NCBI GenBank assembly: GCA_964188305.1
Contig: OZ076897.1
Origin: Podarcis bocagei
Taxonomy: Eukaryota
DNA length: 64,000 nt
Reading direction: 5' to 3' (one strand)
The position numbers and the translations under genes were made by a program. The notes below the pieces were generated by a model. That model made no database searches, was not told where the DNA came from, and saw only the letters and a list, made by a program, of their open reading frames with translations. Of the stretch, positions 7,605 through 31,759 are shown piece after piece. The number at the start of each line of letters is the position of its first letter. The stretch's first letter is position 1.

Positions 7605-7721
7605 ATGTCCTGGGTGCAAGCTGCAGTCAGCCAGCACAGCGAAGATGTGTTTGATGAAGATGCAAATGAAATGGACATAGCTCAGAAAGAATGGAAGAGC
7701 ACCATGGAGAAACGACTCAAA
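7605..7721 (+). CDS. YAE1: YAE1 coding exon 1
   Basis: ATG at 7605; donor AAA|GTAATT. Confidence 0.93.
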
Positions 7722-10283
7722 GTAATTATATGGTTTGGGTTGGGGATTGACCACATCAGTGACATAAAAATTAGCTATTGAGATCCAAGATGGATTAGCC
7801 TTCAGAATAGCACTAGCAGGTCCACACACACCCCTCCCCAGACACACCTCAGTCAGCTCAGAGGCAAATAAGGTGTAGGGAGGATGTATTGGTTGCAGGG
7901 AGAAAATAATCCATGTTGGGGGAAAGGGAGAGCCTTGGCTCACTGGCCTTCACTGCAGAGTTGCTGATCAAAGGATTAAGGGTCAGCTATAGTGTTCTGT
8001 TTGGGAGAAACATAGTTCTGGAATTAAGCAGAGAAAGTCATTTCCAGATGAAACTAATGGCAATTCACAAGGATAGCTTAACTGTTAATAATGCACTGTC
8101 TTGTGTCATGCTATATAATCAAAGATTCAATTTTCCTCTTTTTTTTTTTATTTGTTCAGTCCATGCAACTGGAAGGGCTGAAAAAGATCTCACCCTTTTG
8201 TTATTGTGCCGAATATCCTCTGTCTACTCCAGAAGCACTTTTTTCATTATGAGGTTGACTTTTTAAAGCTACATGATTGGCACACCTATTATGTGTAAGC
8301 CACACCTCTAGAGCAAACATTTTTATAATTGCAGGTGGACCTCATTTCATGATGGCTTATTTGAATAAGCCAGGCAGATACCGATGAGTACTGTACTGTT
8401 TCTTTTTACGTTCTAGTTGTTAATGTGATTTTGATCTCTTTGCTCAAAGGAAGGCTATAGGGAGGGAGCAGAAGCTGGAAAACTGCTGACAGTTCAAGAG
8501 GGTTTTAATCAGGGGTATAAAGAAGCAGCAAGGAAGATGATCTCATGTGGCCAACTCAAAGGAACCATAAGGTATGTGGTAAAGCAGCATTTTAAAAAAA
8601 GGAATGGAAATTAATTGTACAAGTTGTTAAATTGATAGACCTCCACCAGAGAAATATATCTATTAATATCCTCTGCTAATATAGTGCCCATTTAAATTAT
8701 GAACACTTAACTTTTTATTCATTCTTTATCGTCACATCCTGCAGGGAACTGGGGTGCGCAGCCAGCACAGCAAGATTTAACACTTTGCTGATGGGGGGGG
8801 GCGTTAAATCCTACTCAGTTCGGTAGGATTTAATTTAAACCTCTTCACGATTAAGAAGGGTTTTGCATTGAAATTCATCTAACAGAATCCCCTTCCATCT
8901 TACCAGCACCTTGCTGCCTGCAGGTTACTTTGAAGTTCTGACAATGGGACTTGTCACCAGATCACCTGATGCCATTGTGATGTTTGGTGATTGACAGGAG
9001 GACAGATAAGGATCTCTCCTGTGAAGCCAAAAAGGCTCCCCACCCCTTAATATAGCCACTCGTCCTGATAAAATTTCACACACTGTTGAACTTGAGCTAC
9101 TGGAGAACAGAAAAAGATGGCAACAGTAGTCCGATTGGTTTGTAGCATTTGAAAGCTACAGCCAACTTCTCTCTCCGTGCTGCTACGAAACCCGGAGGCA
9201 GCCTCTTCCACGTAGACCTCCATTGAAGGTGCCTTATAGGATGCACTGTCGAACGAGAAAATTTTCAGACTACAGTGGTATCTCAAGTTACAAATGTCTC
9301 AGGTTACAAACTCTGCTAACCTGGAAGAGTGACCTCGAGTTGAGAACTCTGCCCCAGGATGAGAACGAAAATCGTCTGCCAGCGGCGCAGTGGCAGCAAG
9401 AGGCCCCATTAGTGAAAGTGCGCCTCTAGTTAAAAACAGTTTCAGGTTAAGAACAGACCTCTGGAACGAACTAGAGGTACCACTGTACTCCATGCCGGCC
9501 ATTTCTGAGCAAAGACTTGTCTTCTGTCTCTTGATTTCCCCCCTCAACCATCATGGGCTGTAGGAACTTGATTCCATTATAATGAGTATCTCAGGCATTT
9601 GCTAGATAGAAAGCACGAAATGATACACCATACTAGAAAAAGGTTATTTGATTGGTGCCATGGTGATATCTAGATTTCTTATATGGCGCTCCAAATTGGA
9701 ATACAAAACTATTCTAGGTTAATGTTCTGCTCAGTTGCCCTTTGTGAATGAGAATAAATATGGGAGGGAAAAAATGTTTTTTTAAAAAGCTGTCTTATTT
9801 ACATTTGGTCTCAGATCCATTTTTAACTTTCATTGTTTTTATAGTGCTCTTTCGTTCTGGTGTCAGCACAATGGATGCAGTTCTGGAGTGCTGAGCGAGG
9901 TAACTGACCTGCTGAACGAACTGGGAAAATACGAAGAATCTGTGTTTAGAAGTCTTAACTCTACCCACCTGCAGCCCCATGTTGAAGACTTGATGGATAC
10001 TATTGAGGACATGGACCTTGGTCATGCCCTCTTACCTGCGAAACAGCATGATGGAACTACAGGTGGAAGAATCTCTGAAAACGGCATTGAGTTTAGTGGA
10101 CAGTGTTGCAGAAATGATAGCAGGACTGGATCCTTCCAAGAAGAATGTTGCAGAAGGAGAAAAGGTGGCACTGATTCCAAAAAGCCAGTGTTTAGTTGGC
10201 TAAAAGAAAAAACTATCAATTTAGTAGATCAGCTAGGTTTGCCACCAGACACAATTGAACACATTCAATTATTGCAAAGTTAA
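7605..10283 (+). CDS. YAE1: YAE1 maturation factor of ABCE1 (Yae1 domain protein), join(7605..7721,8450..8571,9845..10283), 225 aa
   Basis: MSWVQAA..EDVFDEDANEM..QKEW..KRLK / EGYREGAEAGK..QEGFNQGYKE..GQLKGTIS / ALSFWC...QLLQS*. Contains the Yae1 GYxEG..GK..QxGFxxGY motif. GT-AG introns with consistent phases; 678 nt. Confidence 0.95.
8450..8571 (+). CDS. YAE1: YAE1 coding exon 2
   Basis: aag|GAAGGCTAT...ATAAG|gtatgt; encodes EGYREGAEAGK. Confidence 0.95.
9273..9485. mobile_element. Tc1/mariner MITE
   Basis: Same family as 3287-3534; TA flanks. Confidence 0.8.
9845..10283 (+). CDS. YAE1: YAE1 coding exon 3 (terminal)
   Basis: tttttatag|T GCT CTT; in frame with ORF 9888..10283; TAA stop. Confidence 0.92.
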
Positions 10284-12144: not shown

Positions 12145-12283
12145 TTACTGCTGGTTATGTTCAACTTGTTGGTCTTTGCAATTTTCCTCACAGACTCCGT
12201 CTTTGCTCAGAGAAGTTTCCTCAGCTTTTTGTTGGGTGGCTTTCTTGAAAATTGCTCTCATGAGAACCGGAATTGACATACAC
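12145..12283 (-). CDS. MED1-like terminal exon 17
   Basis: CMSIPVLMRAIFKKATQQKAEETSLSKDGVCEENCKDQQVEHNQQ* (TAA at 12147-12145). Confidence 0.9.
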
Positions 12284-14733
12284 CTAAGAGAAGGGCCAAG
12301 TCATCCAATATTTAAGGAACTGCTAATTCACTAAATATAATCTGGCTGCTCCATATGCAGAACTAACTGACTGGTGGATAGAGCAAGCTGCATTTGCCAC
12401 TGTCTCCAAAAAAGTCAGCGCAGTGCAGAAAGCTTTATAGATTACATAAAATAAATTTCTACAGTTCCATGCCAGTTCTTCTGTAAGGTGACATAAAGGT
12501 ACAGGTACCCCTGACGTTAAGTCCAGTTGCGAACATCTCAGGGGTTGCAGCGCTCATCTCTCTTTACTGGCCGAGGGAGCCAACGTTTGTCCGCTTCCAC
12601 AGACAGTTTTTCCGGGTCATGTGGAAATTATGACTAAACTGCTTCTGGCGAACCAGAGCAGCGCACAGAAACGCCGTTTACCTTCCTGCCGGAGTGGTAC
12701 CTATTTATCTACTTGCACTTTGATGTGCTTTCGAACTGCTAGGTTGGCAGGAACTGAGACTGAACAACGGGAGCTCACCCTGTTGTGGGGCCTCAAACCG
12801 CCGACATTCCAATCTTATTTTGCATTGCTCACTCAACAGGAGCAGTTTGAATCTTTAAAGTTGCATCCCACCACACTGCTGAAAATCCTCCTCATGCTTG
12901 ATGTTTCACAAGTATTTCCTATCCCTCCACCACCCATTTCTTTCATCAATCTTTCCTGATCCTTCTAACTAATAATAATCATTTTATTAGTTGTACCCTG
13001 CCCATCTGACAGGGTTGCCACAGCCACTCTGGGCAGCTTCCTGCTATAACAACATTGTTTTACTACCATTGTTGTTGTCGTCAACAACAACAACAACAAC
13101 AACTATCAGCCTTTTAATTTCCTTCAACACTTCAAGCTCTTTCCCGTCAGAGCAAGGGAGACCTTGCCCACTCCTGAACCTCTCTGTCTCCTGGCCACCT
13201 TTACTCTGCATGCAGAGTTGCTAGTGTTGCCGTTGCTCCAGCCAAAAGGCTATGGCAGGCAGTGATACTGAGGCCTACCTGAAAGTGGTCCAAAGACCAC
13301 TGCTGAGACTCAGCCCACTGGTGCAGAAACACTGGTCTAAGCTGCCCATTATCGAAGCAAAGGAGCCTCTATTTGCGCTAACTATTAAAAGATGGAGGAG
13401 ATTTTAGTTGCCATGAGTTCCAGAGAATGTCACACTGACATACAGGGCTCAACTAACTCTTCTGACCATCTGGAGCTAGACATTTATGGAGCTTGTAGGT
13501 AGGTTATTTTGGTTGCCTGTTTCTCACGTCTTAAGCCTGATGGAGTTATTCCACTGTGTTGTGCTTTCCTATGAAAGCTTACTCAGTATTATTAAGGTCC
13601 AGTTCCTCCAGCAAACTGTCTAAATGCATGCATCATTTGAGAATATCCTTTTTAAAAAAGCTGAATTGGCCCGTGAAACCCACCATTTTTAATAAATTCT
13701 TCATTACAATGTTTATATGGTATTGTTTCTCCTGCCCCAATGATTATTCAAATACTGAAAAAAAATTCCCGTTACATGAAATAATTTTTTTATCCTTTAA
13801 ATTACTTAAAAGTTTCTAGCTGCTGTACAAAGTTATTAAATTTATAGATAGCCACCCATCGGTTTACAAACCATTCCATTATACATGACACAAAAGGAAA
13901 GGGGATGGGAGGGACAGAAGAAAACTTGGCCCTTATATATTATAGAAGTGTTACCTACCGCTTCAGGACTCTTGTGAGATAATCATTGCTGCAGATTAAT
14001 GCTCCATCTTCAGAATGTGTATGAAGAGTGCATATAACGTCCCTTGAACTCAGAACATCGACCATCACTAAACAGAAGAGGGAAAAATGCTCTAAAAACA
14101 AGTGTGACATTATAGTAGAGACAACATTAAGAATTATCAACAACCACCAAATCTATTCAATCCTTAAATAGGAATTCTTTCTGATCACTGCATTGGTTTT
14201 ACTTATTTTCCTGAAAGCATGCATGCTTCGTGGGAAGAGGTCACATTCATGCTCATTCCATGCTGACTGTAAAAATGAGCAATTACAAATCGCTACAAGA
14301 TAAAAAATATATGTCACCAATAATTTCAAAAGGAGTCCATTCACACATCTACCTATGAGTAACAGGCATTTGAACTGGCTCCTGTTATCCCATCACCAGC
14401 CCAATCCAAAGATGTGCATCTTGAAAGGATTAACAAAACAGTAAACAGGCTGTTCACCTGTTGCAAGTTTATCCCAAGCCATCTTCAAAGCTGGTGTGGT
14501 TAAAGTTTAATCCATAGATTATGTGATAAAGTGCAACATCTGCTTACTTTTTAATATTCCCAACCATAGTATAAAACTGGGAATTCAGATCCAGTTTATA
14601 CCCAGGTTTCAAAATATGTATTTCCACCCTGGGACCATAGGGTGAAAGATGGACTGTAAATGACATAATGTGCTACTTTTTGTACCAATAGCCCCCAAAC
14701 CAATTTAACAGAGACAAACACTAGAAACGCGCG

Positions 14734-14768
<35 letters not shown>

Positions 14769-14930: not shown

Positions 14931-14985
<55 letters not shown>

Positions 14986-15129: not shown

Positions 15130-15176
<47 letters not shown>

Positions 15177-18100
15177 CACCTCTTTTCAGACCTTATTTAT
15201 GAATATGTGGCAATAGGTCACAGATGTGATCCAGCTCCTCCTCTCTAGTTCCTTGCCTCTGTGTGTTCAGACTGCATGGGGAGATGGGCAGGTTAGAGGA
15301 AGGCAGGAATTGATTAAGCAAAATTTGGGGTGTTGGTTCTAGCAGGGGACTATTGGGGCTCCACATGAGGCACAAAGTGTCTTAGGCCAGCGCTTTTCCT
15401 ATAAATATTTGAAAGCAGTCACAAGAGCCAGCTATTTAGGGCTTTGCACAGTGCTGCTCTGGGAAAAGGGAGGTAGCTTTGCAATGTGTGGTCAATGCTT
15501 TGTGTCAATGTGTGGTATGGACATCCAGTCTGTTCTTAACACTGAAACACACATATACACATTCACACGTTCTACCCCAGCCTGAGCCAAATGAGGCTAC
15601 ATGTGTAGTGCAAAATGCAGCGAGTGCATTTCTGCACCACGTTCCCTGCTGACTTTTTGTATGCCTGTGTGAACCCAATACACCTTTCCTTTGGAGACAT
15701 ACCACAGGCTAGGTTCTCCTCCAATGGATGCTGGAATGTTACTGAAAAACTAGTGGCTTTTTGCTGAAAGACGTCAAAATGAAGCAAGTCTGATGAATCT
15801 GGAAGGAAATAACTGTTTAGTGACTGTTTGGGCTAACCCTGTAGCAATAGAGCTAAACGTTTAATTTGAACTAGAGATATAAATTAGTGGGTGTAGTCAG
15901 AAAACATTTGTATTGATTTCCAAGTATTCTATATCCCTTAACTTAAAACATTACCATCGAAGTAGGAGTGGGTTGGTTTTTGCTGGACTCAAGGAGTCCT
16001 GCTTTGTACAAGCTCATGAAGTTTCATGGTACAAACATCAAATGAAATACAGTGGACTCTCGGGTTGTGAACATGGTCCGTGTGGGATGCATGTTCACAA
16101 CCTGCAGCAGCGCGTCTGCGTACACAAGGGTTGCGATTCAGTGCTTCTGTGCATGTGCAAAGCGCGATTTAGCGCTTCTGTGCATGCGCGACTGCTGAAA
16201 TCCGTTCCAGTACTTCCGTGTTTTGGCAGTCCATAACCTGAAAAAACGCAACCTGAAGCGTCAGTAACCCGAGGTATGACTGTACAGTTGCTGAAAATTT
16301 CCTTTTCCGTTTCACTATCTCCAAAAGAAATAAGTTATAAGGTGTCAACATTGTTGGTTGGAATCCAAACAGTCCCAAGCACACCTGAAAGCAAGTCCCC
16401 ATGAATACTTCACTCATTTTTAAATCTCTGCCTGCAGGAACTTTTGCTGAGAAGGGAGGGCCGTAGCTCAGTGGCAGAGCATTGAGTGCCTTGCACGAAG
16501 AAGATCCCACGTTCCACTCCTGCCATCTCCAGATCTGACTGTGAGAGAACCTCACCTGACACCCTGGAGAACTGATACCAGCTGATGTGGTGTAGTACTG
16601 AGCTATGTAAGAAAAGGGGGCAGGGGCCGAAAACAGAGTATATAGTTTCAAGATGGGAGTTGCAAATGAAACAAAGAAGAAGGGGGAGAACATTGCAGAA
16701 AATGCACATTCGATTTGCGTGATCTGTTCTACGCTATTCATATTGTTGCACCCCACCCTCAATCTCCAAGGTTTCAGGGATTCCAGGTGCTTACACAGGG
16801 TTTGTGATTTCTTTTGGGAATGAGGCACAATGGAGACTGTGGTCTCTTTATGATGTATGGTTTATCTACACGTATATACAAACTGAGCCTACAACATTAG
16901 TTTCTCCCACGGCAGCAGCCTTGGATTCAAACAGAAATCAAGTATTTCTCTTTGACCCTGTCTCCAGATTGCTGCTTTTCTTCCTGGTCACTTCACTGCT
17001 TCTCTCAACTCTGGCTTTATCTGTGAGAGGGGGCCCCACCCATTTGCCATCTTGCACCTTAATCCCCCTTAATGGCTCATTGCTCAGATTTATCACCTCA
17101 CGAGGAGGCTAGCCTGGCTATTCCTTGGTTAAATTCTAACACTTGCTAGATCTAAAGATTAGAGGGGTCTGGCACCCAGCTTAACCTCCACAGATATGAT
17201 GGGCTCACAATTTTCCTAGCCACTTTCAATGAATTGGATCACAAAAATGCTGAGAGGGGAGCAGAACCAGTATGCTGTCCATCACACCTCCTTATTTCGA
17301 ATGCCTGAATATCTTGTCACCACCATCCAAGGTGGACCTAACTTTACATGCATCCAACATACAAATCCCAATTGATATATTTGAGCTTCACAGCAAATAC
17401 TGAAGATAAACTCTTCCCAGAATTCACTGGTAGAAACACAGCAGAATCAGAAAGAGGTGTGAGCAAAAGATGTGCGAACATCTTACCTTCACACTCAGTT
17501 GTCTCAGACACACAGCTGCTAATGAGGGTGTTATATGCTGCTTGAAGTCTGAGAACTTCAATCATATCAGGCACACATTTGGGATGGGTGAAAGGGATTT
17601 TCTTGACCATTGCTCCAGCCAGATCAGATTTTTCTATGCCTTTATCTAGGAAATAGCTGTGTTTTGGGCAGCCTGGAAGAGACTGATCATAAACCATACA
17701 AGATTTGTTCATGGATGTAGTAGCAATTGTTTCCTGCATTGATTTTTTTAAAAAGTAGTGAATAGGAAACATGAATAAAAGGAACTTCCCTTCAAAAACA
17801 TACCCTATTTACTTGAGTCTAATGTACCATCAAATCTAATGCGCACCTCAATTTTCAGAACCCTGAAACCAAAAAAAGTATTTGCTGGCGAATGTAAATG
17901 TGCCATCGAATCTAATGCGTACCTTAATTTTCACAACAAAAAGGGTGAGCATTAGATTTGAGTAAATAAGATAGTTGTCTAGAACAGTACAAAGAATGTG
18001 ACACTGGACTTTTAAGCAAACCTTGAAATAAGCTGCTTATATTATAGATGCCTCGACCACCCATTTTTAAACAAGTTATTAAATAGAGTAGTCTCTGCAC

Positions 18101-21100
18101 TTGATCTGAAGAGTTGCTCAGCTCTCAAGCCCAATGGCACCGTGGGGAAAAACCAACCTGTCTGTGTATACATGGTAGTTTAAAGTGGATTTTATGCATT
18201 TTATGTGTGTTTGTTTTTCACCTTGTCCACACGACATTGTCCTCATCTAAGTAGAAGTCCACACTTCCCTCTGCCATTTAATTCAGAACTTCCCAATCCA
18301 TGTGATAAGGGGCGGAAATCCAATGTAAACTCAGATGTTACCCAGACACACTGAAGCACATTGTGAGGGCCACTTCTTATGTGACAACGTTTTGCTGGGT
18401 GTACTGCCACCTATTCCTGCACCCCTTACTTCCACTGGTGAGGTTTCCTTGGTGGGCTTTTATTGGGGCTGAGACAGAGACGCACTTTGGGGGGAGGGGG
18501 TGAACCCACAAGTGTGGTATACTGGAAAACTTGTATCTCAGTAATAATAAATATTGGCCACTCACACAGGTAAACAAATGATTGACATACCCACAGTGGA
18601 CTTCAGTTTTCCAGAACTCAAGGGGAGGGGTGGGAAAATACTAACTGAGAGGAGAGGACAGCGCATCCCATGAACACATCCCATAAACATCAAGACGGAG
18701 TTCAGCTGAAAGTGCCCATGTATGGATGAATGCACATGGACAGAAATGCACGTGGACAAATGGTGTCTGTGTGAGCCATGTGCACATTAAGCCTCTGGTT
18801 TGTATACCAGTAGTGCCAGTTTCCGCATAGTAGGATTTATCACACACAGCTGTTTCAAGGGCAACTTGTACCAAAAAGAACTGAATATAAACTAAAAGCA
18901 TGGCCAAGAAGATGTAAGAAATAAATATAATCCACCAACAGGATTCACTCCAGTTGGATCTTTCTACCAAGTTATTCCCCACAATGAATTCATTCTATGC
19001 TATCTTTATGAAACTTTCCCAGCTATTATGAGACCATGTGTGCAAATGGTTTTAACCTGAAACAAGACTTTTAAAAAAAGTTGTTATGGGTTAGTATAAG
19101 GCCACATTTAGTTTTTTAATGACATCTCATGGATGACAGCCCCACAATTTTGCACATTAGAGTCACTGAATTGAGTGTAATTTTGTGTGTGAGAGAGGGG
19201 GAGAGTAAGGAGAGAGAGAGAGAGAGAGCGCACACACAATTTGTGTATGTTGTGTAAAGGCCAACCTGGGCAAAGAATTGCAACTTAGGTCATAATCAAA
19301 TTTAGCAGTGTTAAAGTCATCTACTTCAGAAAATTCATGTGACTTCCCAGAATTCAACACACAGCTTTCAGTAAGCTGTAGAATTATGACTCATTTAGCA
19401 GCTTCATTCCTGACCTCATAACTGGAGTGAATACCAACAATTGGAGTATAATTACCACAATGAAGGAAGAAGTACTTGTTATCAAACCATGCGGATGATT
19501 TTCTGAAAGGGCAAACTGAACAATCAGCTCATGTAGAGGACCTGGCTTCAACCTAGCAACTGGAAGCCCTAAAACCAAATAATTTTTTTCCATTAGTACT
19601 GTACAAGAGCATCATTAAAGATGGAATGCATTTGAGAGAGACAGCATCACATGAGAAGAGGCAAAGAGAGATGTGATCACACAATGGTTATCAATAAATC
19701 AGTGGGATGGTTGCCAACAGAGGGACAGGGCTATTCAGATCAGCAAGCACTTGTGCTCCTGAATGGGCCAGTTGCTCCTGGGAAGGCTGAGACAAATACC
19801 AGCATGAATGCTATACTCCTAGTACAGAAGCAGCAATACTTGGTTCTCATTTTACGCTCCTGCCACTTCTCCCTTTCTAACTCCACCCTGGGGCCCCATC
19901 AGCCTTCATACCCCTGTAGGGGAAGAATTAACCAAATGTTAATTAGGGTCTATTGAAATGCTAGCATGTTAGGAGGGAGGGTGGAGGTACAAAATTATGT
20001 ACTTAATTAAATTAAAGCATGCCTGTAAGCTCCTGTAGTTTGTGAATACTGGATGAAGACAGAGGAAAAGGACAGTTCTGGTAAAACATCAGGAAAAAGC
20101 AAGCTGATAATGGTGCAGAAATTACTTCCTTCAGAGGCAGGAATCTGGGGCTGCTGAAGAAAAGGGTTCAAAGTTAAGCATCAGGTAAAAGGAAGCTAGT
20201 TTGACCAGTACTCTGGTAGCACAATCTTATAAGTTAAGCCAATGTTTCTCAAGCTTGCGTCCCCAAGTGTTGTTGGACTACAACGCCCATCATCCCTGAC
20301 CACTAGTCCTGCTAGCTAGGGATGATGGGCATTGTAGCCCAACAACACCTGGGTACCAAAGTCTGAGAAAGGCTGTTCTAGGATCTCAGACAGGATCTTC
20401 CTTTATCAGATCCGGAGGATCTGTGGCCCTCCAGATGTTGTTGGACTTCAACTCCCACCATCCCTGACCATTGACCAGGCTCACAGGGGCTGGTCAGAGC
20501 TGGAGACCACCAGCACTGCTCACAGTAGACAGCACCTTCAAAGGGAAACATCAGTTGGTGAGGAGAGGGGGCAGAATAAGAGTTCAGCCTGGCCTGAATC
20601 CAGATCAAAAGCACATACTGGGTCATGGATTGGCAGCAGCCTTTTCTTCAGACTGAAAATGGCCAGTTTAAGCATGTACTCTTAAGAAGTGTGAAGAACA
20701 CAATGTGTAATTTGAGGACGCACTTCCAGGTTTTGTACACATTTTCCTACCACGTTCCTCACAGTGTCTTAAAATGACAGACTATTAAGAAGTGAATTTG
20801 ATGTGCTATCACACACCCATTAGCGAGGGATTTCCATGTTCAGTTATACTGATAGGAGCATGAATGATGCCCTCAAGTCTTACCCATCTTCACCAGTCGG
20901 CGAATTCACAAGTGAGGGTGCAAGAGGGAGTCGGTGAACGGCATCAGCCCCTCCTATTATGACAAGCACCTTCCTACCGTCTATTTTCAAGCCTGATGGA
21001 AGGAGAAGACACAAATATGTCAGACTGTGAAGATGATACACAAATGGCCTTGAAGTCTTTGTCCAGGAACATTGATTTCCCCCAATACTTAAGTGAATTG

Positions 21101-23250
21101 TGATTCTAAGTTCTATAGCCGGTGATGTTATCCTGTCAGAGAACAGAAGGTTGCATGATGGATGCCTTGCTTGCCATTTGAACCCATTTTGTCTTTTGTT
21201 ATTTCAAAGCTAGTTCTGGACTAGTCTGAGGGAAGGCCCTGTGGCAGTATCTATTTAGGCCCCCTGGGAGTTTCCATGGTGACAGCTGTGGGTCTGGGAA
21301 GCCGGCAGCCATTTTAATAATAAAATGGCCGAGATTTTAAGTCCCCACAATGCCTTGGATGGATACTATGTGAACCAGTCCAGGGCACTGATGGGAAATT
21401 TAATATGGTGGTCCTCTTCCATTTGTTGTTGTCAGTAAAAACTAAAGTGGGGGAGCAGGTGGGCCAAGCTGGGGTGGTCAGCTCTGATGGACTCTGCTGA
21501 AATGCTAAGCACTGTCTTTAGTCCTCTGCCGTTATGACTGATGGTTATTGGGGGGTTTTGACCCAAGCAGATAGCAGGACAAATAAAGCAACAGGTCACC
21601 ACCAACTCTTAAACTTGTCCATCTTCTCACAAAATGACCACATCCAGACCAGTACACTTCATTTTTCTCCCTCATTGTTCCAGTATTTATCTTCACATTC
21701 ATGCATTGCAATATTAACACAGTTGTGTGCCATGTAAAAAGCATTACATAAGACAGTTTCTTTTTTAAAAAACCACACATCCCGGAATGGATATTAGAGA
21801 AATGGAAAACTGTAACGGGTTTTAGTGTTTATACTGTGTTGTAAGCCACTTTGAGTCACTTTTGTGAGTAAACTGACAAAATAATAATAAATACCTGGGG
21901 TGAGTTGTTCCTCTAGAATTTGATACTGCGATAGATAAAATTCAAGGTTCATAGGGCTTCCTATAGAATTTGAGAAAATTAGATGGATTAAACAGAAAAA
22001 GCACATAGCGGATAGCAATGTAAGCTATGTAAGCTTAGGATGTTTGATCCCCTTCATCATTTTTGTTTGCTTCCAATGCAAAGGACTCAATACCCCAGGG
22101 CCATATTGTGTGACAGGGGACCCAAACAACTGCTTGGGGTTGCAAGGAGATTGTTGTGGAGAGCTAGTTATCCACTAAACAGTTTAAACATATAAAACAA
22201 GTAAGTTCCTTTTTACAAATCACAGAATTGTAGCATTGGAATGGACCACTTGGGTCATCTAGCCCAACTCCCTATAGTGCAGGAATCTTTTTATCCAATG
22301 TGGAGCTCAAACTCACAGCCGCGAGATTAAGAATCGAATGCTCTACCAACTAAGCTATCACTCCTAGGGTGAAATTTCTTCCTGATAAATCATGCATACA
22401 ATTCATGCATAAATATTGAGGAGCAAGCTGCAGGACACCCTAAAATAAAGTACAGTGGTACCTCGTGTTAAGAACTTAATTTGTTCTGGAGGTCCGTTCT
22501 TAACCTGAAACTGTTATTAACCTGAGGTACCACTTTAGCTAATGGGGCCTCCCACCGCAGCCGCACGATTTCTGTTCTCATCCTGAAGCAAAGTTCTTAA
22601 CCTGAGGTACTATTTCTGGGTTAGCAGAGTCTGTAACCTGAAGCGTATGTAACCTGAAGCATCTGTAACCCGAGATACCACTGTATTCAAGAAGGTTGTA
22701 CAAATGGGGGAGGAGCCCCAAGAGATGCTCCAAAGTGCCATTTAGGGACAACTCTGCACACTGCACATGGTCAAGTAACTACCAAAGAAAAGAAGAATTA
22801 TAGGCAGAAGAAAAAGGCATTGGGGGAAGCAGTGGTCCAATGATCGGACACCCAGGAAATCACTAGCTGGTCTTGGTTTTAACCTTTAAGGCAGTTGTGC
22901 AGAAAGTGCACAGTTTGATCCTTTATGCTGATTGAAAGGTCGGCGGTTCGAATCCCCGTGGTGGGGTGTGCTCCCGTTGCTCGATCCCAGCGCTTGCCCA
23001 CCTAGCAGTTCGAAAGCACCCCCGGGTGCAAGTAGATAAATAGGGACCGCTTACTAGCGGGAAGGTAAACGGCGTTCCGTGTGCTGCGAAGGCTCGCCAG
23101 ATGCAGCTTGTCACGCTGGCCACGTGACCTGGAAGTGTCTGCGGACAGCGCTGGCTCCCGGCCTCTAGAGTGAGATGAGCGCACGCACAACCCTAGAGTC
23201 TGTCAAGACTGGCCCGTACGGACAGGGGTACCTTTACCTTAATACATAGA

Positions 23251-23294
<44 letters not shown>

Positions 23295-26200
23295 CCGCAA
23301 CAGGACTAGCACCTTATCAGGAAACGTAAGTCAAATGGGGGAGGGGAAGCAGCATTACTCATAAACAAGGAGAAGTGTATGTGAAAAGGGACCAAAACGC
23401 AAGAAGAAGAAGAGTTTGGATTTGATATCCCGCCTTTCACTCCCTTTAAGGAGTCTCAAAGCGGCTAACATTCTCCTTTCCCTTCCTCCCCCACAACAAA
23501 CACTCTGTGAGGTGAGTGGGGCTGAGAGACTTCAGAGAAGTGTGACTGGCCCAAGGTCACCCAGCAGCTGCAGGTGGAGGAGCGGAGACGCGAACCCAGT
23601 TCCCCAGATTACGAGACTACTGCTCTTAACCACTACACCACATTGGCTCTCCAAGGAGGAACTAGTCAGGACCTCTCCTCTATTTTCACAGCTACCTAGA
23701 AAAAGACTCGGGGACAAGAAAGGGGTTGTACACACTCATGTTGGACTCACCGTCATCTCTAGTCAAAAAGCGGTTTTGGAGCACAAAACTAGAAAAAGTG
23801 GTTTTGGAGCGGTTTTGTGAGCAGAAAGTATACTGGGATGAATGTGCTCACAGAACGCTTCAGGTAACGAGCTCCACTAACCCAGAAGTAGATGCTCCTG
23901 GTTGCGAACTTTGCCCTGGGATGTGAGTGAAAGTTGTGCACTGGTAGCGTGGCAGCAGCGGGAGGCGCCATTAGCGAAAGCGCGCCTTAGGTTATGAACA
24001 GTTTTGGGTTAAGAACGAACCTCCGGAACGAATTGAGTTCATAACCGGAGGTACCACTGTACTACAAACAACAATGCTTCTATCATACATGCTACCTACA
24101 AAGTCACCAGAAAGCAATCCCAAGGTATTACTATTCTTTAGCATTCTTAAATTATGCTTGGCTACCATGATCACACAGATATCTACTTCAGTCTGGAGAA
24201 AGAAAGAATAAACAGTTACCTCCACTTCTTGGGTTCAGATATCCAACTTTTCCACATAGTATTTCAGTGACTCTGTCCATACCTGGTGTTCTGTTTTTAA
24301 AGTATATACAGTAATCAGTAAGATCATGCACTTAAATGCCTTAAAATATTTTTTATTATTATGGCAACCTTAGGCTGGAGTGCAAACATTTGAACTTGCA
24401 CCTTCCCCAACCACTGTCAAACCTACCTGCTCAAAGCAGACAGTGAGCAGAGGTCTTTTTCCAAAGCCAGGAAGGCAGCAAACACCTTGGACTTTGTTTC
24501 ACTAGAAAAGAAAGACCTTATTGGAGGAAGGGGGTTTAACATACAATATAATAATTTAAGTAATTAAGTTGTAACAAACAAACCTGCTTCCTGGAATCTG
24601 ATAAATATTTAACATGTCTGCCACCATGTTTCCAAAGGCATCAAAATTTTCCATTCTAAAGAGCAAAATACATGCAACAATTGTCAGTGCTGATAAGGCA
24701 AATATTTGGGAAAACACCACCACCGAAGTGAATCTGATATTGGCAGCATGTTGACATAGAAAGCAGTGGGATGCTCTTACCATTGAGCTACCATCAAACA
24801 AGACATCTAAAAAGCAGTTAAATAACTTTGGAAAGTGGCTCAAATTGGTCCTGGTTGGAGGGCAGGCAGGGATGGAAGCAACAGTTATTAGAACTATCTA
24901 TTCATTTTTTACTTCAACCACAGAAAACGATATGGGAGCAGTGGCAAAGGATTTTTATTTTATGAAATTAAAAATTAAAAAATTATGTGTGCTAAAAATC
25001 CACCCAGCGCATATGTACCTCAGAAGCTGCAAAAGATCTTCACAGGTCTAGAAGACGAAAGAACAGAGGTTATGGTTTTCTAAAGAGGGGCACTATTTTC
25101 TTAAAAACAAAGCAGAAAGGAGAAATGACATAAGCCGAACCTTAGTCAACACGAAACTTTAGCAGACACTATGAGGAATATCCAAGGATGTTTTCCCCAG
25201 GATCTATTCAGGAACAGTCACTTTTGGTTGTAAACCAGAATCTATAAAGGCATATATTTCCTACTCTTCTCTCACCCATAGTTGGAGTGTGATTGCATCA
25301 TTTTGAAAGCCCTTGGGGTCCCTTCCAACTCCACAATTCTAGGATTCTATGTAACCTCCCCCCCCCCACCATGTGCTTCACTGCATCCACATATTGCATT
25401 TACTTCCTTTATTGGACTACCCCCCTCCAGACTAGGAAAATTCAAATTTAACGGGGGAAATTGTGGGCTAGCAGTTGGATGAGGACTTTATGTGAACGAG
25501 GAACAACCAGCTTCAAACCCGCATTAAGTTCCCCATGTGGACGAGCCCATATAGTTGCTACTTCATGTCAAGCAGTCTCATCAGATGGGGACAAATTAAG
25601 GAGGAATTGTCACCCAGCTATAAGGAATTTTAACAGTCTTTGTGCAATTATTTTGCAGTTCAGCATTTGCTATTCCCACAAATTTTGCATTTGCAAATGC
25701 AGATGTTTAGTTTGGTTGTAGCAGCAACAGAATAAGTGTTATAACTAATGTAAAGTTGTCCCTTTGACTTGTTTGTTGTTGTTTAGTCATTTAGTCGTGT
25801 CCGCCTCTTCGTGACCCCATGGACCAGAGCACGCCAGGCACTCCTGTTTTCCACTGCCTCCTGCAGTTTGGTCAAACTCATGCTGGTAGCTTCGAGAACA
25901 CTGTCCAACCATCTTGTCCTCTGTCGTCCCCTTCTCCTTGTGCCCTCCATCTTTCCCAACATCAGGGTCTTTTCCAGGGAGTCTTCTCTTCTCATGAGGT
26001 GGCCAAAGTATTGGAGCCTCAGCTTTAGGATCTGTCCTTCCAGTGAGCACTCAGGGTCGATTTCCTTAAGAATTTGATCTTCTTGTAGTCCATGGGACTC
26101 TCAAGAGTCTCCTCCAGCACCATAATTCAAAAGCATCAATTCTTCGGCGATCAGCCTTCTTTATAGTACAGTTCTCACTTCCATACATCACTACTGGGAA

Positions 26201-27001
26201 AACCATAGCTTTAACTATACGGACCTTTGTTGGCAAGGTGATGTCTCTACTTTTTAAGATGCTGTCTAGGTTTGTCATTGCTTTTCTCCCAAGAAGCAGG
26301 TGTCTTTTAATTTCGTGGCTGCTGTCACCATCTGCAGTGATCATGGAGTCCAAGAAAGTAAAATCTCTCACTGCCTCCATTTCTTCCCCTTCTATTTGCC
26401 AGGAGGTGATGGGACCAGTGGCCATGATCTTCGTTTTTTTGATGTTGAGCTTCAGACCATATTTTGCGCTCTCCTCTTTCACCCTCAATAAAAGGTCCCT
26501 TTGACTTACATGCAAGCATCCCACTTGCTCCACAGGGTTTATTATGAAGCTATAGATATTTTAGAAGAACAAGAAAAGCAGGATTATATTTCATCAGATC
26601 AGAACACCCAAAGGAAAAATAAAATAAAATTACCAGGGGTTTTTTCCCAGGGTGAGCCAACCTGACATCCACCACTTTTCCATCCGTCTCCAGGTGAATC
26701 TCAATGTAGAAGGATTTGGATGTTATATAGCAAACTGCCCCACTGGGGCTCACATAATAATTAAGTCTACAGAGGAAAGAAGGAAGAAGAAAAAATGCAT
26801 TGCTTATTTAAAAGTTACAGTGTGCAATGGAAGCCTAGCAGGGCTGGCCCAAGACATTTTGGCACCTCAAGTGAACCACAAAATGGTGTCCCCCCTCTCC
26901 ACCAGGAAGGAAGGGTGAGTGAAGATCTACGTCAGGAACAAAGTGATGAGGACTAAAGATCGGCAGAGTGGCTGGGGAAACCCAGCCAGATGGGCCGGAA
27001 A

Positions 27002-27056
<55 letters not shown>

Positions 27057-30000
27057 ATATTTTATTATTATCTGCTGCTGCTGCCCCTGTGGATCCTGCC
27101 ACATGAGGCAGGATGCCTCACTTCATGGATGGGCTGACCCCGAATGCAAACTTTTTTCTTTATCTTGGTTGATGTATACGGGTTCTACAGAAAGGAGTGT
27201 TTGCACCCAGCTTTCCAAACGGCTGTGTTTCAGTTCCTGATTAAACGTCAGCAGCAGCAGGTCTGTACATCAGTGGAAGACCACATGCTTTGGACTGAAC
27301 CCCCCACCCCACCCCACCCCAGGTTCAGCCTCCAACATCTCCAGGGCTGGGAAAGGCAGATGATGCAAGGCGACACAGAGATCAAAATACTAATAGCTGG
27401 ATTTGGCATAAAGCGGCTTCCTACTCCTGCATTTTCTGAAATGCCACTTTGTAGTGGCATTTATCTACGCTTTGTCAAGAGGCTGAGGTGAAGTAGTAAT
27501 CATTTCACAGGCCCCAGTATAGGCAATGTCCCAAAACTTTCCACCCGAGGGGAACTCCTGACCTGCTCATGCTCATCTCTTTCAAGGATATCGCAGGAAA
27601 AGGGCAGTAAGCCGCAGCTTAGAGGATGCATTAGCCACTGAATATACCGAATGGCATGTACGCATGTCATGTGAAAATTATGCAGCCGTAGAAACATACC
27701 TAGCAGTCCCACTGCTGCGGGAAGTGAAGAGAGCGTGTTTAGTAGATGCATAGTATACTTACCCCTTTCGATTTGACAAGAGTGACAGCTTGTTCATTGT
27801 TGCAGCCAAAGGTCCTGCTGCACACATGAAAAAATAGGGAATAAGGTTCCATCACACAGAATCAACGTGTTCAGTAAAAGCAGTCAACAGATCCCATAAG
27901 TTTAAGAGCAAAAGACCAAAGATTCTTGCTTAATTGCGCTATATTGCTCATCGTACCTTTTGTAAAAGGAAGGCATCTAGGGCCCAGACACATTCGTTGC
28001 ACAAGATGACAAGACAGAAGCTAGACATTGTTTCCATCAAACATAACAGAAAATCAGGCAATCTTAGAGTTGATTACCGTGCAAGGTTCTTTGTATTTTC
28101 TCAAGGCAAATAGATATGGGAGACTCTGATGCCTTACTTGAAGTCCAAGAATGTTTGTCCTCATCAAGAGAGAGAGAGAGATACATATACATATATTTGT
28201 ATCATATAATCTTTACATGCAAGTCAGAAAATTGGCTGGTATGTTCAAAGCAATATAGGGAATTCAGCACTCTCAGTCAGGCCTCTTATATCTTGACCTT
28301 CATTGCCCTCTTTGGGGTGCCAGATCAAAATGCTGCAGCGGCAATGGAAGCTACAACTGGCAGAAGACACCCCCCCACCAGGCTTTATAACAGACCAAGT
28401 AACCCCACATCCCAGTATCAGCTGGGGGTGGATTGGAAAAAATATAAAATCAAACGGGGGAAATTTGCCTATTCAATTTTTCAATCCATAAGGGATTGAT
28501 TAGCTTTGTAATTACAAAGCATTACAACACTGCCATTTTTATTTTCCATTCTCACCATGGAATTTGCATCACTCTCCCAAGACCACACACAAACTATCCA
28601 TTTAATTGAATTTAGTTTCTTCCTCGATAATCACAATCAATCAGTATTTTGGGGAAGTTAAGAATCCCCTCCATTATTCCCACCTAGAGCCATCTTGCCA
28701 AATTTCCCCCTTCAGAGTTATCCATCCAAGATCAAGAGTGGAGATGACAGGGCAGTAAAATAACCACCTCACATGTTAAACTTTGGCCCGTCAGGCAGAA
28801 AATAAGATGGAAAACATATACACACGTTGACTCACTTTCCCTTCTACTTTCAATTATTCTCCTCAAGAAAGCATTTTTTTTATAAAAAAAAGTTTCTCCC
28901 ACATTACTCCTCCCCAACAGAACTGATTTCATTACAATTCTTACCATGGAGAGACGAACCAGCTCCATAGTTTCACTCCATGGCTTCTGTGAGAATTTTA
29001 GACGTAGCTTTTCCATTATGTCATTTGTAGACCCAGATTTCGCAGGATCTGGAAGAAGTTAAGAGTTTAATTAGCTGAGAGTGCAGGAAACCTTTTTTCA
29101 GTTCAAGGGCCACAGTTCCTTGCTTGAAGCCTCCTGGGGGCCATGGGCCAGAAGCAAAAGAGGGTGGAGGAAGAAATGGGAGTAGCTGGTGTCTTCACCT
29201 TCCCTAGATCCCTCTTTATCTTCCAGGGAAGCCGGAAGCTTTCTCAGAGTTGAAGGAAGCTTTCCACCCAGCAAAACCCTCCAATGGGCTGACAAAAGGT
29301 GTAGTTTGGGAGGCTGTATGGCTTAGGGAAATTTGAGGGCCAGATGAGAGGCTCGAGGTCCACATTTGGTCCCTGGGCTCAAGGTTCCCCACCCCTGATA
29401 TAGCAAAACAGCCAACTATTATATGACTTAAACGAACAGCCCATACTGCAACAATAGTCACTTTAAATTAGGACTATTTAGTCCCAGATGGGTGAGGTAT
29501 TTCAGATTAACCGACTCATGAACTTGGCTACAATATAGGTACTAATATTAATGGACCTGTGTTTGGCTTAATTCCCACTCTTCCACCTGTTGAATCTCAT
29601 AATCTGAAACCTACAGCTATTTTAAAAGTTCAGTTTTATATCTTNNNNNNNNNNNNNNNNNNNNNNNNNNNNNNNNNNNNNNNNNNNNNNNNNNNNNNNN
29701 NNNNNNNNNNNNNNNNNNNNNNNNNNNNNNNNNNNNNNNNNNNNNNNNNNNNNNNNNNNNNNNNNNNNNNNNNNNNNNNNNNNNNNNNNNNNNNNNNNNN
29801 NNNNNNNNNNNNNNNNNNNNGTACAGGAATGTAGGTTTTGGTGTCTTCGGGTGTCTTCCCGTGTAAGAGTTGGGGTGTCTAGGCGACGTTTCGACGAGGT
29901 CTCACTCGTCATCTTCAGGCTGGTGCTTTCGGCTTCTTGTTACTAGAACAGAGCAGGATCTCAGTGTTTGAGTTCCTATAAATACTGTTGAGGGGGTGTG

Positions 30001-31759
30001 GTGTATAGCCTCCAACGTTCTGGGCAGAGAGGAAGTTCCCAGGTTAGTGTGCCTTTTCTTCTTTTGTTCATTAATTACTTGAGGGATATCTTGAGTGATT
30101 ACTTGAGTGATATTCTGAGTACCACTTAGGAGGGTCATTAGGTGTGAATTAGTTGCTAAAGCTTTCGTGTCTTGACCTCTTGACCTTGTAAAGAGTTTTT
30201 CTGAGAAGATGGCTGTACTGCAATTAGTTGTGCTCTGGCTTGGCTTCGTGTATAGGGGCGAGCTGTGGTTTTGTGCCCTGTGCCAGCCAGATCTGTGTAG
30301 GGATTGCAGGGGGGTGCAGCAACCAACTTCCCTTCCTTGACGTCCTAATCTACAAAAAACCTGATGGCTCCCTAGGACACACTATCTACCGGAAAAAAAC
30401 ACACACCAACCGCTACTTACATGCACAATCACACCACCACCCTGCACAAATAAACTCCGTAGCCAAGACTCTCATCTCCAGAACCAAACGCCTGGCTGAC
30501 AAAGACCACTTGACAACTGAGTTACAGAATCTCTCAAATGTGTTAATCGCCAACGGATACCAGCAAAACAGGGTTACGAAGCTAATCCAAAAAGAAACAC
30601 CCCCCAAAAACCAAGACACAGAAGAAAACAATGGCATGGCCCTCCTTCCTTATATCAAGGGCACTACAGATAAAATTAGCAAAATCCTCCATAAACACAA
30701 TATCAAAACAGCCTTTTGCACCAACCAAAAAATAGCCAATATCCTCAGAAACCCAAAAGATAAAATCCAGTTAGAAAACCAAGGGGTCTATGAAATACCC
30801 TGCAAAGTCTGCCCAGCCACGTACATTGGACAAACAAACAGACGAATAAATGCACGTATCGCAGAACACAAGAATGCCGTCAAAAAAGAAGAAAAAACTT
30901 CCTCTCTTTACCAACACATGAAAGAAACAGGACACGAAATTAATTTTGCAGATTCCAAATTGCTCTTTAACATGGAACATCACCACAAGAGAATAATCAT
31001 GGAAGCCATCGAGATAGAGAAACACCCTCACAACATGAACAAGCGTGACGACACGTCCCGCCTGCCAGACATCTGGAAATTAGCCCTCCCCACAAAAACC
31101 GACACCAGAACCAGAGGCACACAGAACGCCATCTCCAATCAACCACACCAGACCCAAACCCAGACCCTCTCCACAGATAAATTACAGACACCATTTCAAC
31201 TAATTCACACCTAATGACCCTCCTAAGTGGTACTCAGAATATCACTCAAGTAATCACTCAAGATATCCCTCAAGTAATTAATGGTTCACTTGAGGTGCCA
31301 AAATGTCTTGGGCCAGCCCTGCTAGGCTTCCATTGCACACTGTAACTTTTAAATAAGCAATGCATTTTTTCTTCTTCCTTCTTTCCTCTGTAGACTTAAT
31401 TATTATGTGAGCCCCAGTGGGGCAGTTTGCTATATAACATCCAAATCCTTCTGCAATAGGAGTAATGGGATGGAGTCCTCAACCTCACCCAAGGGCAGCA
31501 GGGTCATTATGGAGGTAAAGGACAGGTCTTGGGGCAGACATAAATCTATCTTACCAGAGCCAGGGACCTCAGGGGCAAACAACCAGCAGCTTCTACAGCC
31601 GGAGACGGTAGCCTTGTTCAACCTATAACATCCTCTCTGTGGTGACAATACAGCATAGTGGTGTAATCCAGCCACACCTTCCACATTAGCACCTGCCTGG
31701 AAACCCAGACCCTAAGTGGCTGCAAATACAACAGCCCAATTAGCAACTTACTTACCCAT
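12145..31759 (-). CDS. Mediator subunit 1-like paralog (Med1 domain only), about 527 aa, 17 coding exons
   Basis: complement(join(12145..12283,13959..14067,15703..15798,17487..17682,19456..19568,20023..20153,20884..20992,21895..21960,24220..24290,24427..24501,24584..24655,25019..25047,26634..26766,27763..27817,28078..28159,28945..29048,31756..31759)) = 1584 nt with no internal stops. Collinear with MED1 residues ~1-530: KPWSETMELVR~RPWSETIKLVR, CYITSKSFYIEI~CYITSDMFYVEV, VGYLNPRSGG~VGYLTPRSGG, QAAYNTLISSCV~QVAYNTLIGSCV, FSVTFQHP~FSVSFQHP, RCMSIPVLMRAI~RCMSIPVTMRAI. Confidence 0.92.
12496..12810 (-). mobile_element. Sauria SINE
   Basis: aaaggtac..cccctgac...gccgtttaccttcc..gtacctatttatctacttgcac.. 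hallmark sequence. Confidence 0.85.
13959..14067 (-). CDS. MED1-like exon 16
   Basis: VMVDVLSSRDVICTLHTHSEDGALICSNDYLTRVLKR ~ DALICTDDFIAKVVQR. Confidence 0.93.
14727..14767. repeat. (CG)n(CA)n microsatellite
   Basis: Read directly. Confidence 0.9.
14920..15176. repeat. (AAT)n + L2-type 3' tail + (TTA)n
   Basis: gccacccagagtggccggggaaacccagccagatgggcg.ggtataaat tail; related copies near 6490-6550, 12985-13040 and 26965-27060. Confidence 0.7.
15703..15798 (-). CDS. MED1-like exon 15
   Basis: DSSDLLHFDVFQQKATSFSVTFQHPLEENLAC. Confidence 0.93.
16050..16282. mobile_element. Tc1/mariner MITE (subfamily of 2781-3027)
   Basis: TA|CAGTGG...GAGGTATGACTG|TA. Confidence 0.75.
16454..16610 (+). mobile_element. 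tRNA-derived SINE
   Basis: A box gtagctcagtggcagagc and a degenerate B box; similar heads near 37000-37085(-) and 55938-56070. Confidence 0.6.
17487..17682 (-). CDS. MED1-like exon 14
   Basis: SLPGCPKHSYFLDK...FTHPKCVPDMIEVLRLQAAYNTLISSCVSETTECE. Confidence 0.94.
17802..17971. mobile_element. pogo/Tigger-like MITE
   Basis: Imperfect TIR cc.tatttact.ga.tctaatg / cattagatttgagtaaata; TA flanks. Confidence 0.55.
19456..19568 (-). CDS. MED1-like exon 13
   Basis: GLPVARLKPGPLHELIVQFALSENHPHGLITSTSSFIV ~ APLYELITQFELS. Confidence 0.9.
20023..20153 (-). CDS. MED1-like exon 12
   Basis: SPRFLPLKEVISAPLSACFFLMFYQNCPFPLSSSSIHKLQELT ~ LPACFFLKFPQPIPVSRAFVQKLQNCT; donor is GC (AG|gcatgc). Confidence 0.85.
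20884..20992 (-). CDS. MED1-like exon 11
   Basis: GLKIDGRKVLVIIGGADAVHRLPLAPSLVNSPTGEDG ~ VTIEGTSAVYKLPIAPLI. Confidence 0.88.
21895..21960 (-). CDS. MED1-like exon 10
   Basis: GSPMNLEFYLSQYQILEEQLTP ~ HLMNLKYYVSPSDLLD. Confidence 0.88.
22222..22360 (-). mobile_element. tRNA-head SINE with CR1-type tail (also 38305-38420, 62690-62793)
   Basis: Reverse complement reads gatagct.agttggt.agagc..., then cagggggttggactagatg CR1-like 3' end. Confidence 0.6.
22453..22683. mobile_element. Tc1/mariner MITE
   Basis: CAGTGGTACCTC TIRs, TA flanks. Confidence 0.85.
22930..23240 (+). mobile_element. Sauria SINE
   Basis: aaggtcggcggttcgaatccc... ending ggggtacctttacctt. Confidence 0.88.
23252..23293. repeat. 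(CA)n microsatellite
   Basis: Read directly. Confidence 0.95.
23403..23650 (-). mobile_element. CORE/MIR-like SINE with L2-type tail
   Basis: gtgactggcccaaggtcacccagc core; tRNA head reads gtggtgtagtggttaagagc in reverse complement. Confidence 0.75.
23855..24059. mobile_element. Tc1/mariner MITE (partial)
   Basis: Ends gaggtaccactg|ta. Confidence 0.75.
24220..24290 (-). CDS. MED1-like exon 9
   Basis: TPGMDRVTEILCGKVGYLNPRSGG. Confidence 0.92.
24427..24501 (-). CDS. MED1-like exon 8
   Basis: SETKSKVFAAFLALEKDLCSLSALSR ~ KLKTKMYLALQSLEQDL. Confidence 0.9.
24584..24655 (-). CDS. MED1-like exon 7
   Basis: MENFDAFGNMVADMLNIYQIPGS ~ EKNFDEFSKHLKGLVNLYNLPGD. Confidence 0.9.
25019..25047 (-). 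CDS. MED1-like exon 6 (29 nt)
   Basis: TCEDLLQLLR ~ SCPELVQQLR; ttctag| and |gtacat. Confidence 0.85.
25773..26500 (-). mobile_element. BovB (RTE) LINE 3' fragment in MED1-like intron 5
   Basis: VKEESAKYGLKLNIKKTKIMATGPITSWQIEGE..., MRREDSLEKTLMLGKMEGTRRRGRQRTRWLD; (CAA)n tail. Confidence 0.95.
26634..26766 (-). CDS. MED1-like exon 5
   Basis: LNYYVSPSGAVCYITSKSFYIEIHLETDGKVVDVRLAHPGKKPL. Confidence 0.93.
27763..27817 (-). CDS. MED1-like exon 4
   Basis: AGPLAATMNKLSLLSNRKG; NAGNAG acceptor, donor gtaagt. Confidence 0.82.
28078..28159 (-). CDS. MED1-like exon 3
   Basis: DKHSWTSSKASESPISICLEKIQRTLH; acceptor is GAG, donor gtaatc. Confidence 0.8.
28945..29048 (-). CDS. MED1-like exon 2
   Basis: DPAKSGSTNDIMEKLRLKFSQKPWSETMELVRLSM; ttccag| and |gtaaga. 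Confidence 0.9.
29821..31283 (+). mobile_element. Penelope-like element: inverted 3' segment (29821-30320) followed by 5'-truncated RT-thumb/GIY-YIG ORF (30321-31214)
   Basis: QLPFLDVLI..IYRKKTHTNRYLHAQSHH; GVYEIPCKVCPATYIGQT..RIAEH; MEAIEI..MNKRD. Confidence 0.93.
29877..29926 (-). ncRNA. Minimal hammerhead-ribozyme-like motif in the Penelope pLTR
   Basis: Reverse complement reads CUGAAGA-u-GACGAG(ugagac)CUCGUC-GAAAC-GUC. Confidence 0.6.
31282..31452 (+). repeat. 171-bp perfect inverted duplicate of 26708-26878 (MED1-like intron 4/exon 5 junction)
   Basis: Base-for-base reverse complement. Confidence 0.95.
31756..31759 (-). CDS. MED1-like putative start exon (ATG G)
   Basis: gagaaATGG|gtaagt strong donor; phase 1 matches the next exon, giving M-D-P-A-K. 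Confidence 0.55.

Follow-up and report, generated by a model that had tools for sequence, protein, structure and literature searches.

The window analysed here, that is, the whole stretch of 64,000 nucleotides (nt) of Podarcis bocagei DNA (assembly GCA_964188305.1, contig OZ076897.1), is vertebrate DNA with a guanine-plus-cytosine (GC) content of 0.38-0.66 and 3 assembly gaps. It carries YAE1 on the plus strand (7605-10283) and, on the minus strand, a 17-exon paralog of the Mediator subunit MED1 (12145-31759), here named MED1L. The genes converge tail to tail, with 1.9 kb between their stop codons. A preliminary description of this DNA had placed a MED1 paralog beside YAE1, and the complete gene model bears this out.

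MED1L runs from the ATG at 31759-31757 to the stop codon at 12147-12145 (Table 1). Its exons were placed by tblastn of ortholog proteins against the window and by exact mapping of the exons of shark, gecko and bird orthologs on their own loci, and the two smallest ones by splice-constrained scans. The frame contains no internal stop and encodes 527 residues from ATG 31759 or 515 from ATG 29016 in exon 2; the latter is the start annotated in the elephant shark and the former matches the N-terminus of the cordylid lizard Hemicordylus. Every acceptor is AG and the donors are GT, with the sole exception of a GC after exon 12. The 12 extra N-terminal residues come from a one-codon exon 1 (ATGG followed by the donor gtaagt, 31759-31756). 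Joined in frame with exon 2 it gives MDPAKSGSTNDIMEKL (MDPAKSG...), and Hemicordylus has MDPVKPASSNAIIETL. A candidate for exon 4 at 27617-27563 and an exon 14 boundary at 17733 were ruled out by the splice-constrained scan and the ortholog exon maps. The peptide GCSDLMK, 24 nt past exon 5, had been taken for read-through into the micro-exon and was also rejected, the true micro-exon being exon 6 (25047-25019).

One of the assembly gaps (29645-29820) falls within intron 1 of MED1L (31755-29049), 630 bp upstream of exon 2; it is non-coding and crossed by no reading frame. The intron measures about 2.7 kb here and 2.9 kb in gecko, and its flanking exons have the same orientation. Since exons 1 and 2 join in frame as in Hemicordylus, the sequence on the two sides of the gap is arranged as in the orthologs, in both order and orientation. 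Next to the gap lies a Penelope-like element (30069-31283), in which a GIY-YIG open reading frame (30228-31214) lies between perfect 87-nt inverted repeats. Abutting this element, positions 31282-31455 are a 174-nt inverted copy, 99% identical, of 26705-26878, at the junction of MED1L intron 4 and exon 5.

Membership in the Med1 family was established from single exons and from orthologs. Two window exons matched the Pfam Med1 profile (PF10744) above the cut-off of 25 bits, exon 14 with 38.4 bits and exon 5 with 31.4 bits (profile positions in Table 1). The exon 14 query (window 17488-17733, 82 residues, 17 of them intronic) found the family nonetheless, and its match to human MED1 was in structures 7emf and 8t1i. 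Database searches used single window exons or stored ortholog proteins, and the joined window protein was compared locally. MED1L orthologs cover profile positions 2-427, that is, the whole domain, and one of them (P0305) aligned to residues 15-522 of human MED1 in the chains solved by cryo-electron microscopy of Mediator (E = 2e-114). The joined window translation was 65% identical to the MED1-like protein of Hemicordylus, 55% to that of gecko, 51% to that of turtle and 42% to that of elephant shark, and 39-40% identical to canonical MED1.

The exon structure is that of MED1. Window exon ends map to loach MED1 residues 69, 96, 114, 158, 168, 192 and 217, which are loach exon ends, and the series of exon lengths follows lamprey MED1 exon for exon, including the micro-exon of 29/30 nt, except for the last exon (139 nt in the window and 3759 nt in lamprey). 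Because the intron positions match those of canonical MED1, loach and lamprey included, MED1L is a DNA-level duplicate and not a retrocopy, as had been proposed from its multi-exon structure; its 16 introns at ancestral positions are not those of a processed copy. By comparison with canonical MED1 (TRAP220/PBP/DRIP205, of the Mediator middle module), MED1L thus has in common the complete Med1 domain, the intron positions and the micro-exon, but it differs in sequence, in its short last exon and in its neighbours, which are YAE1 and RAL rather than RPL19 and CDK12.

The main difference in protein content lies at the C-terminus. The window protein ends 46 residues into the last exon, and its sole LxxLL motif is LLQLL at residue 119, within the folded domain. 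The paired boxes LTSLL and LMNLL/LMTLL (about residues 660-770), present in loach and lamprey MED1, are absent from the MED1L proteins checked, including a 991-residue gecko form. Owing to the short last exon, MED1L lacks both the two LxxLL boxes and the long disordered tail. The gecko form has a last exon of 1.49 kb (L002 42327-43817) and a secondarily long tail devoid of these boxes, and frog forms of 750-915 residues also exist, so that the tailless state differs by lineage.

A gene tree was built with IQ-TREE under LG+C20+F+G4 with posterior mean site frequencies (PMSF), from 30 sequences and 583 columns, with 1000 ultrafast bootstraps (UFBoot) and the SH-like approximate likelihood ratio test (SH-aLRT); supports are given as UFBoot/SH-aLRT. 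The root was set on invertebrate deuterostomes, and fragments shorter than 330 residues and most invertebrate sequences were left out. Canonical jawed-vertebrate MED1 was represented by loach, Varanus and Anolis only, since the sequence library collapses it into few clusters. The vertebrate sequences formed a group with amphioxus as sister (100/100). Within it, canonical jawed-vertebrate MED1 was recovered at 100/99 and the MED1L clade at 99/99, the latter in species-tree order from shark to squamates, with the elephant shark sequence basal and the window sequence paired with Hemicordylus (98/96). The tree does not nest MED1L inside squamate MED1 and the duplication is accordingly dated to the vertebrate stem: it is younger than the split from amphioxus and older than the crown of jawed vertebrates. 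MED1L evolved faster than MED1, with terminal branches of 0.26-0.42 in two lizards against 0.03 in the MED1 of Varanus and Anolis. Of two duplicates, the more derived one usually evolves faster.

In human, 17q12 is the region of MED1, CDK12 and RPL19, and 7p14 that of YAE1, RALA and CDK13. A human HiChIP table lists MED1, CDK12, RPL19 and FBXL20 in a single chromosome 17 locus (PMC6823490), in agreement with the proximity of MED1 and CDK12 that the preliminary description had asserted, and the mouse gene order is Mplkip, Cdk13, Rala, Gm5628, Yae1d1, Vps41 (PMC7674618). The ortholog loci were fetched with 10 kb beyond the gene. YAE1 lies downstream of MED1L, tail to tail and 2-5 kb away, in elephant shark (L001), gecko (L002), white-eye Zosterops (L003) and spadefoot toad (L007). 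On the other side, a RAL GTPase of 206 residues lies 3.5 kb upstream, head to head, in the carp Labeo (L006). The river lamprey Lampetra fluviatilis (L005) has an 1810-residue MED1 with the nuclear receptor boxes LTSLL/LMTLL and a RAL gene 6 kb upstream, also head to head; this lamprey pair occupies L005 1-3870 and 10001-30246. The best matches of the lamprey RAL exon among solved structures were Ral-A (3e-37) and Ral-B, with Ras at 1e-24. The linkage to RALA that had been suggested as a check was therefore found, for MED1L in carp and for a MED1 in lamprey. When MED1L is set on the plus strand, the genes read RAL(-), MED1L(+), YAE1(-), and this arrangement is expected if MED1L once lay between human YAE1(+) and RALA(+). 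As a full-length lamprey MED1 adjoins RAL, this adjacency is probably older than the loss of the MED1L tail. Meanwhile, the canonical MED1 of loach (L009) adjoins RPL19, and the flank of amphioxus MED1 holds an EF-hand gene only. Neither the window nor the 10 kb upstream of MED1L in shark, gecko, bird and frog contains a RAL or kinase motif.

In carp (L006 31267-37010) and eel (L008 24162-29848) an F-box/leucine-rich repeat (LRR) gene of 484-492 residues lies downstream of MED1L in the same orientation. It occupies the position of YAE1, whose adjacency has thus been lost in these fishes. The idea that it is a paralog of FBXL20, and hence a second paralogous pair, was dropped on account of the start of its first exon, MGANNGKQ, which is probably FBXL7-like. 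A 98-residue "gene" upstream of Zosterops MED1L was in reality a fragment of a CR1 repeat.

An exhaustive profile search with one MED1L exon returned 154 cluster representatives. Short MED1-like forms (about 460-990 residues) are present among the matches listed in elephant shark (Callorhinchus), bichir (Polypterus), gar (Lepisosteus), eel (Anguilla), carp (Labeo), mormyrid (Brienomyrus), coelacanth (Latimeria), frogs, salamanders, turtles, many birds, geckos, a cordylid and lacertids, and two more squamate- or frog-like matches came from Logan contigs. The retention in reptiles and other non-mammals that had been predicted thus extends from elephant shark to birds. These orthologs carry the database label "Mediator of RNA polymerase II transcription subunit 1-like". 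Exons of Podarcis lilfordi are 92-100% identical to those of the window in the true exonic spans. In lacertids the ortholog of these database "MED1-like" genes, and of the "small form" of Med1 of frogs and fish (PMC2475620), is the window gene, which is nested in their clade. The named members of 30 clusters and the 120 homologs listed included no mammal, no search of mammalian DNA having been made, and the only gene listed between Rala and Yae1d1 at the mouse locus is the predicted Gm5628 (PMC7674618). MED1L appears to have been lost in mammals.

Taking these results together, we consider it probable that MED1L is a DNA-level duplicate of MED1 from the vertebrate stem, likely of whole-genome origin, which lies between YAE1 and RALA, has apparently been lost in mammals and retains only the Med1 domain. 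MED1L would have arisen by duplication of the MED1 locus, most likely in one of the two whole-genome duplications of early vertebrates. It would belong in the YAE1-RALA interval, the counterpart of human 7p14 with CDK13, and canonical MED1 would have stayed in a 17q12-type block with RPL19 and CDK12.

Several points weigh against this reading. Regarding the mammalian loss, the lists comprised 120-150 matches, and the representatives at 50% identity could conceal a mammalian member. The homologs listed for a turtle MED1L query were mainly turtles and birds with one squamate, so that they are no proof of the loss in mammals that had been suggested, for monotremes and marsupials in particular. 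As to the protein, its incorporation into Mediator is a prediction from sequence. The others concern the round of duplication, the state of the lacertid gene and the scale of the event, and are taken up with the alternatives to which they belong.

The strongest of these alternatives, which we regard as possible but doubtful, is a first-round origin shared with lampreys, in which both lamprey genes are orthologs of MED1 and the lamprey counterpart of MED1L was lost. The two lamprey genes pair together (96/92) and in the best tree lie outside the group of MED1 and MED1L, a placement supported at only 94/92. By the approximately unbiased (AU) test a clade of canonical MED1 with both lampreys was not rejected (p-AU 0.125), being 6.3 log-likelihood units worse; both lamprey genes are long, moreover, and the one checked has the nuclear receptor boxes. 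A clade of MED1L with the RAL-linked lamprey gene (lamprey B) was rejected (p-AU 0.004). The placement of lamprey B is weakened by its deviant amino-acid make-up. MED1L had earlier been taken for the 2R partner of the MED1-CDK12 pair; of this claim the vertebrate-stem paralogy stands, and the best tree favours the second round over the first.

It is rather unlikely that the lacertid copy has ceased to be full-length and is decaying into a pseudogene or a short isoform. Fourteen small runs contain 5-9% of the sampled words of the window, near the exon share, and no run recorded as RNA contains the stretch. Four RNA-type runs were compared with 19430-25100 (5671 letters). In one of them (X1, a related species) a 958-nt contig at depth 7 was spliced exactly at the junctions of exons 8/9, 9/10 and 10/11. 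This contig, the sole spliced one, joins exon 11 to exon 13 and omits the 131-nt exon 12, which shifts the frame and leaves a product of 259 residues plus a 4-residue shifted tail. Exon 12 has the GC donor (CAG/GCATGC, 20022-20021) and the next GT downstream reads into TAA. The public lacertid protein models have only 168-239 residues, and no reads were found over MED1L exons of this interval in the three other runs. Nevertheless, the 17 exons are all undamaged, in correct phase and free of stops, GC-AG introns are functional, a Podarcis model (P0152) includes the exon 12-13 junction, and 2 of the 3 listed exonic differences from the related species are synonymous. The genomic frame of MED1L is intact and a full-length lacertid product is predicted from it. 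In the same interval all four runs cover the intronic repeats at 20190-20570 and 22280-23800 very deeply and on both strands; this coverage is that of abundant transcribed repeat families and not expression of MED1L.

Somewhat less likely still is a small-scale origin, by segmental or single-gene duplication in the vertebrate stem, with the proximity to RALA and CDK13 being coincidental or the result of a later move. One gene pair was analysed, which by itself does not separate a whole-genome from a segmental duplication, and no second paralogous pair was found in the flanks. In the fetched loci, whose flanks reach at most 10 kb, neither CDK13 nor CDK12 was seen next to MED1L or MED1, so that it is the mammalian gene order that ties the two genes to the CDK12/CDK13 pair. 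The full-length lamprey MED1 beside RAL also means that the RAL adjacency may be ancestral. The timing nevertheless fits the window of the whole-genome duplications, and MED1 and MED1L occupy 17q12-type and 7p14-type regions, which carry CDK12 and CDK13 in mammals.

Finally, a recent duplication of MED1 within squamates or sauropsids followed by fast divergence, to which the fairly long window branch (0.42) and the 39-40% identity to canonical MED1 might point, is refuted by the cost of 359 log-likelihood units of joining squamate MED1 and squamate MED1L in one clade (p-AU 5.7e-9, rejected; nesting inside squamate MED1 had been named beforehand as the outcome that would refute the ohnolog reading), by the elephant shark and frog orthologs with the same YAE1 neighbour, and by a MED1L clade that mirrors the vertebrate species tree.

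MED1 is the standard nuclear-receptor-docking subunit of Mediator, and its disordered tail is much used in condensate studies. Work on MED1 has been done almost entirely in mammals, which have a single MED1. The present results indicate that almost all other lineages of jawed vertebrates have retained, over more than 400 million years, a domain-only MED1 paralog at a fixed place between YAE1 and RALA. What MED1L encodes is the folded N-terminal Med1 domain alone, and it is by this domain, ordered in Mediator, that MED1 is anchored in the middle module. In the simplest model MED1L would take the seat of MED1, a function that we infer from its sequence, and the resulting Mediator would be devoid of LxxLL-mediated nuclear-receptor recruitment and of the condensate-forming tail. 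It can be speculated, tentatively, that most non-mammal vertebrates build a second Mediator with tailless MED1L, which may act as a competitor or a tissue-specific tuner of hormone-dependent and super-enhancer transcription. If so, the loss of MED1L would have left the mammalian Mediator uniformly MED1-tailed. MED1L would represent a natural separation-of-function allele accessible in zebrafish, Xenopus or chicken, and one more gene lost on the mammalian stem. For annotation the name MED1L is warranted, because the current labels "MED1-like" and "MED1" mix two genes.

Mediator has other paralog pairs that allow alternative complexes, namely MED12/MED12L, MED13/MED13L and CDK8/CDK19 (Bourbon 2008, PMC2475620). 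MED1 and MED1L are likewise a pair of Mediator subunits, but those pairs are kept in mammals with full domain sets, whereas MED1L is domain-only and missing from the mammals sampled. In C. elegans, MDT-1.2, a small Med1 form also called "MED1L", is similarly a second Med1 protein that is short and accompanies a long one; the gene tree comprises no nematode sequence, and MDT-1.2 is probably an independent nematode duplication and not an ortholog of MED1L. "Small" Med1 forms in frogs and fish were noted by Bourbon (2008, PMC2475620). MED1L goes unmentioned in the abstract of a 2026 survey of fish Mediator paralogs (PMC13069492), and the literature searched gave no account of the synteny of MED1-like, the timing of its duplication, its presence in shark, birds and reptiles, or its loss in mammals. 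The family is thus known to databases and has been mentioned in print once, and its age, its fixed position and its mammalian absence appear to be undescribed in the literature searched.

Table 1. Coordinates of MED1L, YAE1 and the intron 1 assembly gap in the window.
Feature	Coordinates	Strand	Evidence or remark
YAE1 coding exon 1 (MSWVQAAV...EKRLK)	7605..7721	+	80% identical to first exon of the YAE1 flanking MED1L in gecko
YAE1 coding exon 2 (EGYREGAEAGK..., Yae1_N core)	8450..8571	+	49-73% identity to gecko, bird, shark and frog YAE1 exons
YAE1 last coding exon, stop 10281-10283	9845..10283	+	match to Yae1_N genes flanking MED1L
MED1L last exon (139 nt, stop 12147-12145)	12145..12283	-	100% identical to Podarcis lilfordi MED1-like C-terminus
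MED1L exon 16	13959..14067	-	ortholog tblastn and model
MED1L exon 15	15703..15798	-	ortholog tblastn and model
MED1L exon 14	17487..17682	-	Pfam Med1 positions 388-426; about 45% identity to human MED1 363-428
MED1L exon 13	19456..19568	-	RNA contig
MED1L exon 12 (131 nt, GC donor)	20023..20153	-	skipped in the sole RNA contig seen
MED1L exon 11	20884..20992	-	RNA contig
MED1L exon 10	21895..21960	-	RNA contig
MED1L exon 9	24220..24290	-	RNA contig
MED1L exon 8	24427..24501	-	exon 8/9 junction in RNA contig
MED1L exon 7	24584..24655	-	ortholog tblastn and model
MED1L exon 6, 29-nt micro-exon (TCEDLLQLL)	25019..25047	-	also in shark, gecko, bird, loach MED1 and lamprey
MED1L exon 5	26634..26766	-	Pfam Med1 positions 41-77
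MED1L exon 4 (55 nt)	27763..27817	-	splice-constrained scan
MED1L exon 3	28078..28159	-	ortholog tblastn and model
MED1L exon 2 (holds ATG 29016)	28945..29048	-	ortholog tblastn and model
Assembly gap in MED1L intron 1	29645..29820	.	non-coding
MED1L exon 1, coding part (ATG + G, donor gtaagt); 5' untranslated region continues upstream	31756..31759	-	in-frame join matches Hemicordylus N-terminus

YAE1 consists of three coding exons starting at ATG 7605 and encodes 225 residues; exon by exon it is 29-80% identical to the YAE1 genes that adjoin MED1L in gecko, bird, shark and frog. Positions 1-2000 of the window, about 5.6 kb before its ATG, are very GC-rich (0.66), and may represent a promoter of the CpG-island type or a non-coding first exon, either of YAE1 or of a divergent gene.

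Beyond the start of MED1L, a block of about 640 nt (36229-36861) is 71% identical to gecko L002 4710-5297. The two are co-linear and lie 4.5-5 kb upstream of the MED1L start in both species. This block has no conserved open reading frame and is low in CpG; it is probably a conserved regulatory element of the MED1L/RALA intergenic region. Further along, 49400-52700 is a GC-rich retrotransposon with gag- and pol-like open reading frames, some of them oppositely oriented. At 44880-45669 there are two overlapping open reading frames of 189 residues on opposite strands that share terminal residues, a motif that recurs at 29902-30381 beside the gap in intron 1.

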